In this document: positions 36,590 through 45,550 of the stretch, piece by piece | Layout: the number at the start of each line of letters is the position of its first letter | Numbering within the stretch: position 1 is the stretch's first letter | NCBI GenBank assembly: GCA_002269645.1 | Contig: NIVC01001998.1 | Coordinates: 1 to 64,000, forward strand | Direction of reading: 5' to 3' | From: Macrostomum lignano | Taxonomy: Eukaryota | Length of the DNA: 64,000 nucleotides | Made by a program: the position numbers and the translations under genes | The notes under the pieces: model-generated | The model's input: the letters and a program-made list of their open reading frames with translations, nothing else | What the model was told of the DNA's origin: nothing | Databases searched by the model: none

Positions 36590-37148
36590 ATGACCGACCA
36601 GGGGGATTGCGACTGTGACTGCTGCTGCGAGGACTGCGACTGCAGCAGGTGCTGGCTGGTCCGGTGAGTGTCTGTCTGTCTGTCTGTCTGTCTGTCTGTC
36701 TGTCTGTCTGTCTGTCTGTCTGTCTGTCTGTTTGTCTGTCTGTCTGTCTGTCTGTCTGTCTGTCTGTCTGTCTGTCTGTCTGTCTGTCTGTCTGTCTGTC
36801 TGTCTGTCTGTCTGTCTGTCTGTCTGTCTGTCTGTCTGTCTGTCTGTCTGTCTGTCTGTCTGTCTGTCTGTCTGTCTGTCTGTTTGTCTGTCTGTCTGTC
36901 TGTCTGTCTGTCTGTCTGTCTGTCTGTCTGTCTGTCTGTCTGTCTGTCTGTCTGTCTGTCTGTCTGTCTGTCTGTCTGTCTGTCTGTCTGTCTGTTTGTC
37001 TGTCTGTCTGTCTGTCTGTCTGTCTGTCTGTCTGTCTGTCTGTCTGTCTGTCTCTTTGTATGTCTGTACACTCAAGACTGTGAGTGCACTCGAAAATTTT
37101 GCTTCCAGGTGCCTGCGTTACATCTTCTGTTGCGGTTGCGGTCGCTAA
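36590..37148 (+). CDS. Cys-rich microprotein A, 37 aa: [37 protein letters not shown]; exons 36590-36663 and 37109-37148
   Basis: CG|GTGAGT donor, ttccag|G acceptor, phase-2 intron inside the Arg codon; homologous to B, C and D. Confidence 0.8.
36670..37055. repeat. (TCTG)n microsatellite filling the intron of microprotein gene A
   Basis: Direct reading. Confidence 0.97.
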
Positions 37149-37739
37149 GCGATGAAGAGGCGAAATAATGAGCAACTAGAGTTTCATGACTAAACAGTTT
37201 AGAAAAATATTGATTTAAATGATTGCTTAGAACTTCGTTTTTAATTTTAACAATTTACCGCGGATTATTTGTTTATTCAATACTAGTACAGACAGTTAAC
37301 TTTTCTATCTAAATTTTTATCCAGAAACAGTATATCAATTTTTTATTTCTGCAAATTAAAACTTTACGTATTGGGTTAGTAAGTAAAAAGTACAGTAAAG
37401 CTACACTTAGAAATTGAATAGCTTGTTGGTTGTCAAATTTTAGCAGGCACTACCTCATGCCAGCACTGGTAAGCGCTATTTTTAGACAGAAACAAAAATG
37501 CAGCCGCTGTCTGCAAGTACAGTTGGCTGCACAATCCTGTTAGAGTTTACACTGCCCACGGGTGCACAATATGCACTTGGGGTGCAGCGGGCTAGAGCAG
37601 ATAGTATTAGGCTTTGGGAATTCCGGGTGCAAACTCTTGTAGAAATTTTTGCAAACGTTATTCCAGCATCTTCTTTTTAAAATCTATCATATGATTGTTT
37701 AACATTGAAGTCATTATCTGCCAATAAAGTAAATTATCT

Positions 37740-40700
37740 ACCATATAAATCAGTCATCTACCATGTAAATCAGTTACCTACCATAGAAGTCAGTTACCTA
37801 CCCCATAGAAGTCAGTTGTCTACCATAGAAGTCAGTTACCTACCCCATAGAAGTCAGTTGTCTACCATAGAAGTCAGTTGTCTACCATAGAAGTCAGTTA
37901 CCTACCCCATAGAAGTCAGTTGTCTACCATAGAAGACTGTTGTCTACCATCAAAGCCAGTTATCTACCATAGAAGTCAGTTAGCTACCCATAGAAGTCAG
38001 TTAGCTACCATAGAAGTCAGTTACCTACCATAGAAGTCAGTTATCTACCATAGAAGTCAGTTACCTACCATAGAAGTCAGTTATCTACCATAGAAGTCAG
38101 TTATCTACCATAGAAGTCAGTTATCTACCATAGAAGTCAGTTATCTACCATAGAAGTCAGTTATCTACCATAGAAGTCAGTTATCTACCATAGAAGTCAG
38201 TTATCTACCATAGAAGTCAGTTACCTACCCCATGGAAGTCAGTTGTCTACCATAGAAGTCAGTTGTCTACCATAGAAGTCGGTTACCTACCCCATAGAAG
38301 TCAGTTGTCTACCATAGAAGTCAGTTGTCTACCATAGAAGTCAGTTACCTACCCCATAGAAGTCAGTTGTCTACCATAGAAGACTGTTGTCTACCATAGA
38401 AGTCAGTTGTCTACCATAGAAGTCAGTTACCTACCCCATAGAAGTCAGTTGTCTACCATAGAAGACTGTTGTCTACCTTCAAAGCCAGTTATCTACCATA
38501 GAAGTCAGTTAGCTACCCATAAAAGTCAGTTATCTACCATAGAAGTCAGTTATCTACCATAGAAGTCAGTTATCTACCATAGAAGTCAGTTATCTACCCC
38601 ATAGAAGTCAGTTGTCTACCATAGAAGTCAGTTGTCTACCATAGAAGTCAGTTACCTACCCCATAGAAGTCAGTTGTCTACCATAGAAGTCAGTTGTCTA
38701 CCATAGAAGTCAGTTACCTACCCCATAGAAGTCAGTTGTCTACCATAGAAGACTGTTGTCTACCATAGAAGTCAGTTGTCTACCATAGAAGTCAGTTACC
38801 TACCCCATAGAAGTCAGTTGTCTACCATAGAAGACTGTTGTCTACCATCAAAGCCAGTTATCTACCATAGAAGTCAGTTAGCTACCCATAGAAGTCAGTT
38901 AGCTACCATAGAAGTCAGTTACCTACCATAGAAGTCAGTTATCTACCATAGAAGTCAGTTATCTACCATAGAAGTCAGTTATCTACCATAGAAGTCAGTT
39001 ATCTACCATAGAAGTCAGTTATCTACCATAGAAGTCAGTTATCTACCATAGAAGTCAGTTACCTACCCCATAGAAGTCAGTTGTCTACCATAGAAGTCAG
39101 TTGTCTACCATAGAAGTCAGTTACCTACCCCATAGAAGTCAGTTGTCTACCATAGAAGTCAGTTGTCTACCATAGAAGTCAGTTACCTACCCCATAGAAG
39201 TCAGTTGTCTACCATAGAAGACTGTTGTCTACCATAGAAGTCAGTTGTCTACCATAGAAGTCAGTTACCTACCCCATAGAAGTCAGTTGTCTACCATAGA
39301 AGACTGTTGTCTACCATAGAAGTCAGTTGTCTACCATAGAAGTCAGTTACCTACCCCATAGAAGTCAGTTGTCTACCATAGAAGACTGTTGTCTACCTTC
39401 AAAGCCAGTTATCTACCATAGAAGTCAGTTAGCTACCCATAGAAGTCAGTTATCTACCATAGAAGTCAGTTATCTACCATAGAAGTCAGTTATCTACCAT
39501 AGAAGTCAGTTATCTACCCCATAGAAGTCAGTTGTCTACCATAGAAGTCAGTTGTCTACCATAGAAGTCAGTTACCTACCCCATAGAAGTCAGTTGTCTA
39601 CCATAGAAGTCAGTTGTCTACCATAGAAGTCAGTTACCTACCCCATAGAAGTCAGTTGTCTACCATAGAAGACTGTTGTCTACCATAGAAGTCAGTTGTC
39701 TACCATAGATGTCAGTTACCTACCCCATAGAAGTCAGTTGTCTACCATAGAAGACTGTTGTCTACCATAGAAGTCAGTTATCTACCATAGAAGTCAGTTA
39801 TCTACCCCATAGAAGTCAGTTGTCTACCATAGAAGTCAGTTATCTACCATAGAAGTCAGTTACCTACCCCATAGAAGTCAGTTGTCTACCATAGAAGACT
39901 GTTGTCTACCATAGAAGTCAGTTGTCTACCATAGAAGTCAGTTACCTACCCCATAGAAGTCAGTTGTCTACCATAGAAGACTGTTGTCTACCATCAAAGC
40001 CAGTTATCTACCATAGAAGTCAGTTAGCTACCCATAGAAGTCAGTTATCTACCATAGAGGTCAGTTATCTACCATAGAAGTCAGTTATCTACCAAAGAAG
40101 TCAGTTATCTACCATAGAAGTCAGTTATCTACCATAGAAGTCAGTTATCTACCATAGAAGTCAGTTATCTACCATAGAAGTCAGTTATCTACCATAGAAG
40201 TCAGTTATCTACCATAGAAGTCAGTTATCTACCATAGAAGTCAGTTATCTACCATAGAAGTCAGTTATCTACCATAGAAGTCAGTTATCTACCATAGAAG
40301 TCAGTTATCTACCATAGAAGTCAGTTATCTACCATAGAAGTCAGTTATCTACCATAGAAGTCAGTTATCTACCATAGAAGTCAGTTATCTACCATAGAAG
40401 TCAGTTATCTACCATAGAAGTCAGTTATCTACCATAGAAGTCAGTTATCTACCATAGAAGTCAGTTATCTACCATAGAAGTCAGTTATCTACCATAGAAG
40501 TCAGTTATCTACCATAGAAGTCAGTTATCTACCATAGAAGTCAGTTATCTACCATAGAAGTCAGTTATCTACCATAGAAGTCAGTTATCTACCATAGAAG
40601 TCAGTTATCTACCATAGAAGTCAGTTATCTACCATAGAAGTCAGTTATCTACCATAGAAGTCAGTTATCTACCATAGAAGTCAGTTATCTACCATAGAAG

Positions 40701-44549: not shown

Positions 44550-45230
44550 TTAGATACTCTAACTATTCCTGTTAGATACTCGAACTATTCCTGTTAGATA
44601 CTCGAACTATTCCTGTTAGATACTCGAACTAATCCTGTTAAATACTCGAATTATTCCTGTTAGATACTCGAACTAATCCTGTTAAATACTCGAATTATTC
44701 CTGTTAGATACTCGAACTAACCCTGTTAAATACTCGAACGATTCCTGTTATATACTCGAACTATTCCTGTTAGATACTAGAACTATTCCTTGTTAGATAC
44801 TAGACCTAATCCTTAGATACTAGAACTAATGCTTGTAAGAGACTAGAACTAATCCTGTTAGATACTAGACCTAATCCTTAGATACTAGAACTAATGCTTG
44901 TAAGAGACTAGAACTAATCCTGTTAGATACTAGAACTAATCCTGTTAGATACTCGAACTAATCCTGTTAGATACTCGAACTAATCCTGTTAGATACTAGA
45001 ACTAATCCTGTTAGATACTCGAACTAATCCTATTAGATCCAAGAACTAATCCTGTTAAATACTCGAACTAATCCTGTTCGATACTACTTGACTTAATCCT
45101 ATTAGATCCAAGAACTAATCCTGTTAAATACTCGAACTAATCCTGTTCGATACTACTTGACTTAATCCTATTAGATAACTGAACTAATCAATGTTAGACA
45201 ATTGAACTAATCCTGATAAATACTTCAAAT
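44550..45230. repeat. ~22-bp minisatellite (CTCGAACTATTCCTGTTAGATA)
   Basis: About 30 degenerate tandem units. Confidence 0.9.
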
Positions 45231-45326
45231 GATCATGTTAGATAACCTAATAAGCATTACGGAGTCATTAGTTTAGATTGGTTCTATATTAGAATCTCAG
45301 AAGTTCGTTTTTCAGTTGATGATGGA

Positions 45327-45550
45327 TTAAGCCCAATCAGAATCTCTTTGCCTTCGATACCTCGGGCTCTCATCTGGGCAGAGGCACTTGCAGCAGAATA
45401 TGAAGCACAGGAACCTGAAAAAATCAAGCAAAAAGATAAATTGCTGATCTACATGTAGACAAAAATTGTCCCCGTAACCTCTTACCGGAAGAGCCAACAC
45501 CTGCAGCAGTCATCGCAGCAGTCATCACCGGATGAATACTGATCAACCAT
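45327..45550 (-). CDS. Cys-rich microprotein C, 50 aa: MVDQYSSGDDCCDDCCRCWLFRFLCFIFCCKCLCPDESPRYRRQRDSDWA; exons 45550-45486 and 45414-45327
   Basis: CG|GTAAGA donor, tttttcag|G acceptor, same phase-2 intron. Confidence 0.8.

Follow-up and report, generated by a model that had tools for sequence, protein, structure and literature searches.

A putative family of two-exon genes for cysteine-rich microproteins in a repeat-dense locus of Macrostomum lignano

Do four short, two-exon reading frames that lie within ~9 kb of one another in the genome of Macrostomum lignano encode a family of proteins and, if they do, what might such small cysteine-rich products be for? The DNA that we analyzed, referred to below as the window, comprises bases 1-64000 of contig NIVC01001998.1 in assembly GCA_002269645.1 (Mlig_3_7), and the four genes in question, here named A, B, D and C, give intact frames of 37 (A), 43 (B), 41 (D) and 50 (C) amino acids (aa) when spliced at the coordinates described in the next section. 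We consider it highly probable that they are real, selected, protein-coding paralogs, old members of a single unannotated gene family. Much more tentatively, and with rather more doubt than belief, we propose that their products are cytosolic, thiol-rich microproteins whose conserved core would become membrane-bound after S-acylation.

Gene structure and splicing

Gene A lies on the plus strand. Its exon 1 (36590-36663, ATG to donor; 74 nt, phase 2) encodes 24 residues plus two nucleotides of an Arg codon, ends at the donor CCG/GTGAGT (slashes mark splice junctions throughout), and has its first upstream in-frame stop at -78. The 445-nt intron (36664-37108) is nearly all (TGTC)n microsatellite, in which Tandem Repeats Finder delimits 99.8 copies of a period-4 unit at 36669-37067, and exon 2 (37109-37148, to the stop) follows the acceptor TTGCTTCCAG/G, encodes the last 12 residues and carries a match to the core motif shared by all four peptides.

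The remaining genes are all on the minus strand. In B, exon 1 (42253-42320; 68 nt, phase 2, donor CAG/GTAAAC) encodes MPNQQANDGCCEQYECCRCCLC plus 2 nt, the 103-nt intron (42150-42252) has a G+C (GC) content of 25%, and exon 2 (42086-42149, to the stop), behind the acceptor GACTTTTCAG/A, ends the peptide with …FFCYIFKCKCCREQSGTQHV and includes the core-motif match; the spliced product is MPNQQANDGCCEQYECCRCCLCRFFCYIFKCKCCREQSGTQHV. In D, exon 1 (43016-43068; 53 nt, phase 2, donor CGA/GTAAGT) encodes MMDQTATNNENKRHWFI plus 2 nt and is preceded by an in-frame stop at -90, and a 175-nt intron (42841-43015) with the acceptor AAATTTTGCAG/C leads into exon 2 (42768-42840, to the stop), which supplies …WLCKIFCCECFKKPDEDNKSRKP with the core-motif match and completes the peptide MMDQTATNNENKRHWFIDWLCKIFCCECFKKPDEDNKSRKP. 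In C, an in-frame stop at -24 precedes exon 1 (45486-45550; MVDQYSSGDDCCDDCCRCWLF plus 2 nt; 65 nt, phase 2, donor CCG/GTAAGA), and the shortest of the introns (45415-45485, 71 nt; acceptor GATTTTTTCAG/G) separates it from exon 2 (45327-45414, to the stop), which again carries the core-motif match and encodes …FLCFIFCCKCLCPDESPRYRRQRDSDWA, giving the peptide MVDQYSSGDDCCDDCCRCWLFRFLCFIFCCKCLCPDESPRYRRQRDSDWA.

All four introns are in phase 2 and split the same aligned codon after its second base, and every acceptor consists of a pyrimidine-rich tract followed by CAG. Because the introns are in phase 2 and begin with GTAA or GTGA, an unspliced message would stop right after exon 1; intron retention thus places a stop codon directly behind exon 1 in each of the four genes. 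Upstream in-frame stops were found in all four as well, 24-147 nt before the ATG. The frame of exon 1 of gene B is open upstream (42249-42458, minus strand) to an in-frame ATG at -138, which would add 46 residues if the transcript began further 5′. We favor the start at 42320 over this upstream ATG because M-x-[DN]-Q begins the peptide family-wide.

A shared start and core motif

An invariant start, M-x-[DN]-Q, and a core, R-[CH]-[WC]-[LF]-x-[RD]/x-x-x-x-I-F-[CK]-C-x-C (with the slash at the intron position), are common to all four peptides. Resolved further, the conserved core of ~16 residues reads R-[C/H]-[W/C]-[L/F]-x-[R/D]-x-[L/F]-[C/R]-x-I-F-[C/K]-C-x-C, a mixture of Arg/Lys, Trp/Phe/Leu/Ile and Cys. 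In front of it stands a variable, polar or acidic head that is Asp/Glu/Cys-rich and packed with CC/CxC clusters in A, B and C, and Asn/Thr-rich in D; behind it comes a short, charged tail, in which C and D have a P-D-E motif in common. Cysteines number 12 in A (32%), 11 in B (26%), 10 in C (20%) and 4 in D (10%), whose head lacks a Cys cluster, and aromatic residues number 3 in A, 5 in B, 5 in D and 8 in C, with W/F/Y inside the conserved core.

Translated in six frames, the 64 kb contain the pattern IF[CK]C.C four times, every time in one of these second exons, against a mean of 0.03 and a maximum of 1 in 200 simulated windows of the same dinucleotide make-up. Smith-Waterman scores compared with composition-preserving shuffles gave z = 4.3-9.6 for five of the six peptide pairs, the sixth, B-D, being weak (z = 2.5). 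Exon hidden Markov models (HMMs) found no further family member in the window or in 20 kb of NIVC01001260.1, a duplicate contig compared here over a segment taken from the part that matches window 3-28 kb.

A first-pass annotation of the window had reported four short spliced open reading frames (ORFs) of 37-50 aa with M-x-[DN]-Q starts, GT-AG junctions, a phase-2 intron at one shared codon and the core motif, and every detail of that description that could be checked is correct. Its further characterization of the core as Cys-studded suits A, B and C, with their 12, 11 and 10 cysteines, and does not suit D, which at only 4 cysteines is not really Cys-studded.

Probable purifying selection on the coding sequence

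Similarity among the four loci has sharp limits: the alignable DNA consists of coding sequence and splice junctions, and neither introns nor flanks can be aligned. Comparison of the loci by blastn-short returned only matches of 11-20 nt (E >= 0.07), and with the coding sequence masked none was left, which argues both against a recent duplication and against a repeat or transposon with shared flanks. The same 11-20-nt matches support the earlier remark that the DNA is too divergent for a recent duplication.

Nei-Gojobori estimates among the paralogs gave proportions of synonymous differences (pS) of 0.55-0.83, which are saturated, and proportions of nonsynonymous differences (pN) of 0.27-0.53, the latter biased downwards somewhat by a codon alignment that was guided by the protein alignment; pN was significantly below pS for the pairs A-C, B-C and C-D (Fisher p ~2e-4). 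Despite the saturated synonymous divergence, four of four genes still have an ATG, an open frame, a stop, the two splice sites and the same intron phase, and all gaps are multiples of three. The probability of four stop-free frames arising by chance is ~2e-5. In base composition, too, the coding sequences stand out, with a GC content of 0.40-0.61 versus 0.33-0.38 in the flanks, and they differ likewise from the introns. Old paralogs kept by purifying selection are, as judged from these sequence comparisons, the best reading of the four genes, and one in which we place strong confidence; the proposal of purifying selection made in the first pass is supported by the three pairs with pN < pS and by the confinement of similarity to coding sequence.

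Searches for relatives

Does this family belong to any that is already described? An hmmscan of the four peptides against Pfam-A matched no family even at E <= 10, a threshold at which the HMMER filters drop most matches above ~0.1, and a comparison with PDB sequences gave no match. No relative came from a word-indexed search of 5.8 billion protein clusters, with C and the four-sequence alignment as queries, and a full HMMER profile search of 1.84 billion representative proteins, made without exon 1 of D, returned nothing at E <= 0.001. A literature search found the core peptide strings in no paper and turned up no Macrostomum literature on metallothioneins or related cysteine-rich small proteins; among the top matches on microproteins and small ORFs (smORFs), Macrostomum was absent. 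The family had gone unrecognised in the first pass, which agrees with the empty results in Pfam, in PDB sequences and in two large protein collections. It is an unannotated family without detectable relative, yet of a familiar sort, that of small, lineage-restricted, Cys-rich proteins.

A possible membrane-bound core

What, then, might the conserved core do? It is interrupted by Arg, Lys or Asp, and therefore no 19-residue window in any peptide is favorable for membrane insertion (summed Hessa insertion energies are positive in every one, from +3.7 to +15.7) and stretches that lack charged or polar residues reach 8 aa at most. On these insertion energies and short hydrophobic runs we reject a classical transmembrane (TM) or tail-anchored protein. 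No signal peptide is present either: the N-terminal 10-17 residues of each peptide are polar or acidic.

The first-pass annotation had likened the core to CYSTM-type or palmitoylated membrane anchors. The CYSTM module (PF12734) places a TM-predicted helix with 5-6 Cys, among them a patch of 3-4 consecutive Cys, at the extreme C-terminus of proteins of 60-150 aa, behind a disordered head rich in Pro and Gln, and its members have been connected with tolerance of metals and stress (PMC2804304). In yeast, CYSTM proteins had long been annotated as tail-anchored, but it is palmitoylation and not a TM helix that holds them on the plasma membrane (PMC10840359). Against this description, the CYSTM half of the comparison did not survive. 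There is no profile match in Pfam; at most two core Cys are consecutive, with KC in their place in B, and Arg, Lys or Asp break up the core; beyond the last core Cys the peptide runs on for 18 residues (C), 15 (D), 10 (B) or 2 (A), which sets the core back from the extreme C-terminus in all but A; the peptides have 37-50 aa; and the head is acidic and Cys-rich, not Pro/Gln-rich. Membership is unsupported because of these short Cys runs, the 10-18 trailing residues in B, D and C, the acidic head, the small size and the lack of a plausible TM helix.

The likenesses are of another kind. As with the CYSTM/CYSPD proteins (yeast Cpp1-3, plant CDT1/PCC1 and human CYSTM1), the predicted peptides are small and cytosolic, without signal peptide and with a variable N-terminal head, and they have a conserved hydrophobic, multi-Cys segment, with some of its Cys on one helical face and, in B, C and D, acidic residues next to it. 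Were the core helical, a helical wheel would put its positions 3, 10, 14 and 17, which are mostly Cys, together on one face at 160-220 degrees. Cysteine-string or juxtamembrane poly-Cys palmitoylation motifs, such as those of CSP/DNAJC5, SNAP-25 and GAP-43, are embedded in larger multi-domain proteins; they resemble the core in that Cys clusters stand beside hydrophobic and basic residues and the protein has no TM helix, and differ from it in sequence, to which, on the basis of the negative Pfam scan, they bear no relationship.

We propose docking followed by S-acylation because cysteines beside hydrophobic and basic residues, in a peptide without a TM helix, are typical of S-acylation, and because the yeast CYSTM proteins are palmitoylated (PMC10840359). 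The peptides would remain in the cytosol, where the core, as a short helix of aromatic or aliphatic, basic and Cys residues, would be amphipathic and dock weakly on the cytosolic face of a membrane; S-acylation of core cysteines would then fix the peptide there. The acidic, Cys-rich heads of A, B and C would in that event crowd thiols densely together at the membrane, to buffer metals or redox state, with D, which is without such a head, as an anchor-only variant. In function, the core would correspond to cysteine-string motifs or to the Cys-rich domain that is palmitoylated in CYSTM/CYSPD proteins. The mode of membrane binding is thus borrowed by analogy from the CYSTM/CYSPD proteins (PMC10840359), and as an analogy the palmitoylated anchor is reasonable; that the whole scheme holds is possible, and we lean slightly towards doubting it.

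Alternative explanations

Several observations weigh against this account, in its coding part, in its functional part or in both. Besides the downward bias of pN, selection was estimated from just four short paralogs. The genes are known here from DNA, and neither the four peptides nor any relative appears in the protein collections searched, assemblies made from public sequencing runs among them. In leave-one-out tests, exon HMMs recovered C and B and missed A and D at a significant E-value; since both were missed, their membership rests on the start motif, the core motif and the intron position combined. The core cysteines themselves vary, with Lys in B at one Cys position and another Cys shifted in A, and S-acylation is suggested by amino-acid composition. 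AlphaFold2, run on C with the four-row alignment, was uninformative (pLDDT 52, pTM 0.23), its short helix in the core being of low confidence, and no 8-mer is common to at least three of the four upstream regions, which leaves no shared motif pointing to co-regulation.

The main rival would make the peptides soluble, cytosolic, metallothionein-like thiolate clusters that buffer or detoxify Zn, Cu or Cd, with the core as a source of extra ligands or as a dimerisation helix, and we regard it as unlikely, if well worth keeping in mind. It draws on the 20-32% Cys of A, B and C, with CC, CxC and CxxC motifs among Asp and Glu; on their sizes, typical of invertebrate metallothioneins; on the core Cys that would line one helical face; and on the R-[C/H]-W position, at which the Cys of the other three peptides gives way to His in D, the kind of exchange that is characteristic of metal ligands. 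D is also its chief difficulty: with 4 Cys and no head cluster it still keeps the core, so the conserved part of the family is the aromatic and hydrophobic segment and not the thiol clusters. Each peptide, moreover, has 3-8 aromatic residues, and classical metallothioneins have few or none; the Pfam metallothionein models gave no match at E <= 10; and the metal-response-element (MRE) consensus TGCRCNC, an MTF-1-type consensus that may not be that of M. lignano, occurs once in 1.6 kb of upstream sequence versus 0.92 per kb window-wide, which is no enrichment. In size, Cys content and Cys motifs, A, B and C thus resemble metallothioneins; in the abundance of aromatics, the hydrophobic character of the conserved element, the Cys-poor D and the missing profile match, and perhaps in the lack of MRE enrichment, the family differs from them, and a classical metallothionein is a poor fit. 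The first-pass argument that aromatics speak against metallothioneins is fair. A metal-binding role stays in play on account of the acidic clusters of Cys in A, B and C and the exchange of Cys for His in D.

The other rivals concern what the genes are. If the ORFs were untranslated, left over from a repeat or pseudogene family that has decayed or serving as exons of non-coding transcripts, one would understand why they are so far a matter of genomic sequence, why the surroundings are dominated by repeats (minisatellites take up ~8.3 kb of the stretch from 33.8 to 45.3 kb), why all protein collections searched lack the peptides and why B and D are so weakly similar (z = 2.5); it would remain to explain how ATG, frame, stop, splice sites and intron phase came to be kept in all four at saturated synonymous sites, with pN < pS, stop-free frames that chance would produce at ~2e-5, gaps that are all multiples of three and similarity that ends at the borders of the coding sequence, and we judge it improbable. 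A transposon-borne repeat is rejected, flanks not being shared. Rather less probable still is a reading in which peptides of 37-50 aa would not be the true products, the exon pairs forming 3′ ends or alternative exons of larger genes, or B, D and C being joined as cistrons in a single polycistronic unit that is trans-spliced. Transcriptional units that are trans-spliced and polycistronic are numerous in M. lignano (PMC5730564), B, D and C stand head-to-tail on the minus strand within 3.5 kb, and B has its in-frame ATG at -138; in-frame stops nevertheless lie 24-147 nt 5′ of each ATG, a stop ends each unit, M-x-[DN]-Q sits exactly at the ATG with similarity gone upstream of it, and a polycistronic precursor would give the same four peptides anyway. 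A single multi-domain gene is rejected, every unit having its own start and stops. Finally, families of small, Cys-rich proteins that are duplicated in tandem and evolve fast often turn out to be secreted effectors, which might make these peptides toxins, antimicrobials or adhesive components; secretion is very unlikely indeed because the N-termini are polar, with no hydrophobic signal in the first 10-17 residues of any of the four, and Cys number (12, 11, 4 and 10) and spacing are not conserved as they are in a disulfide framework.

Flanking signals and genomic surroundings

Candidate promoter and polyadenylation signals, all of them consensus matches, accompany most of the genes. A TATA-like element lies 179 nt 5′ of the ATG of A (TATAAAA, 36411-36417, plus strand), 106 nt 5′ of that of B (TATATAT, 42420-42426, minus strand) and 98 nt 5′ of that of C (TATAAAT, 45642-45648, minus strand); that of B falls inside the upstream extension of its reading frame. 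Candidate poly(A) signals follow the stop of A by 207 nt (ATTAAA, 37355-37360, plus strand), that of B by 81 nt (AATAAA, 42000-42005, minus strand) and that of D by 160 nt (AATAAA, 42603-42608, minus strand), the last of these preceding the TATA-like element of B. For most of the genes, the distances of these TATA-like and AATAAA-like candidates are plausible.

Minisatellites fill ~8.3 kb of the interval 33.8-45.3 kb, and the microprotein genes are islands between the arrays. Four such arrays, at 33829-36177, 37703-41937, 43305-43907 and 44538-45244, have periods of 20, 20, 14 and 22 bp, respectively, and up to 209 copies; the 3′ untranslated region of gene C would need to cross the 22-bp array before reaching a first AATAAA. 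Neither Rfam families nor tRNAs were found in the 64-kb window.

Elsewhere in the window, other genes and mobile elements are apparent. The duplicate contig NIVC01001260.1 is 90-97% identical to window 3-28 kb, which fits the known large-scale duplication of the sequenced DV1 line. An intronless gene for a proteasome alpha subunit of 253 aa (18660-19421, minus strand) encodes an identical protein on NIVC01001998.1 and NIVC01001260.1, in surroundings that are merely 90-97% identical in DNA. A gene resembling D-2-hydroxyglutarate/D-lactate dehydrogenases (FAD_binding_4 and FAD-oxidase_C; ~12122-16488, minus strand) has a product of 410 aa here and of 539 aa on the duplicate contig; its introns hold ~30-bp tandem repeats, and the repeat stretch yields long spurious ORFs (15239-16009). 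An apparently intact Ty3/Gypsy-type retrotransposon (4631-9156), with a zinc-knuckle gag at 8284-9156 and a 1195-aa pol (protease, reverse transcriptase (RT), RNase H and integrase) at 4631-8218, is missing from NIVC01001260.1 and so was inserted after the duplication. A 256-aa ORF (9835-10605, minus strand), which is not among the called genes of the collection, has a coiled-coil-like C-terminal half and a Gly/Ser/Thr repeat, and gives a weak match to an intermediate filament profile, at 22.7 bits versus a Pfam cut-off of 40 bits.

Closer to the microprotein genes, an inverted duplication of ~820 nt, 100% complementary between its arms (29638-30454 and 32290-33105) and with a spacer of 1.8 kb, bears in each arm part of a fibrinogen C-terminal domain exon (ORFs 29379-29906, minus strand, and 32720-33223, plus strand); such an arrangement reflects either an inversion-duplication of very recent date or a palindrome created in assembly. 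Beyond them lie a mariner/Tc1-like transposase remnant (50555-51607, plus strand), whose domain matches are weak and partial, and a non-LTR (long terminal repeat) retrotransposon (56151-60201, minus strand) with ORF1 followed by endonuclease/RT and RT/RNase H over two overlapping ORFs, a split that suggests a frameshift.

Discussion

The four genes invite comparison with the micro-exon genes (MEGs) of schistosomes, flatworm-specific small hidden genes with many tiny symmetric exons and a signal peptide. Both are lineage-restricted, arranged in tandem and missed by ORF-based annotation; unlike the MEGs, the genes described here have two exons, a phase-2 intron and no signal peptide. The finding alone opens no long-standing question, as lineage-restricted small Cys-rich proteins are common and function is here read from composition.

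How could such genes be overlooked? Spliced micro-ORFs escape when each exon is under 30 codons, and ORF callers of the TransDecoder type omit products so short. TransDecoder-type calling was the coding-potential step in the annotation of M. lignano (PMC5730564).

If the genes are expressed, they would constitute a new protein family that is in no annotation pipeline or database, with 0 matches among 1.84 billion representative proteins. M. lignano is promoted for marine toxicology (PMC11641670). It is also transgenic-tractable, so that a family of Cys-rich membrane or metal-binding microproteins would be directly testable there. At its widest, and here we speculate beyond what we think likely, the family could be larger than four members and restricted to Macrostomum or to flatworms: lipid-anchored thiol microproteins that would be a membrane-associated analogue of metallothioneins and CYSTM proteins, independent in origin and missed by annotation because their exons are under 30 codons, and that could serve as a main thiol-based metal or redox buffer.

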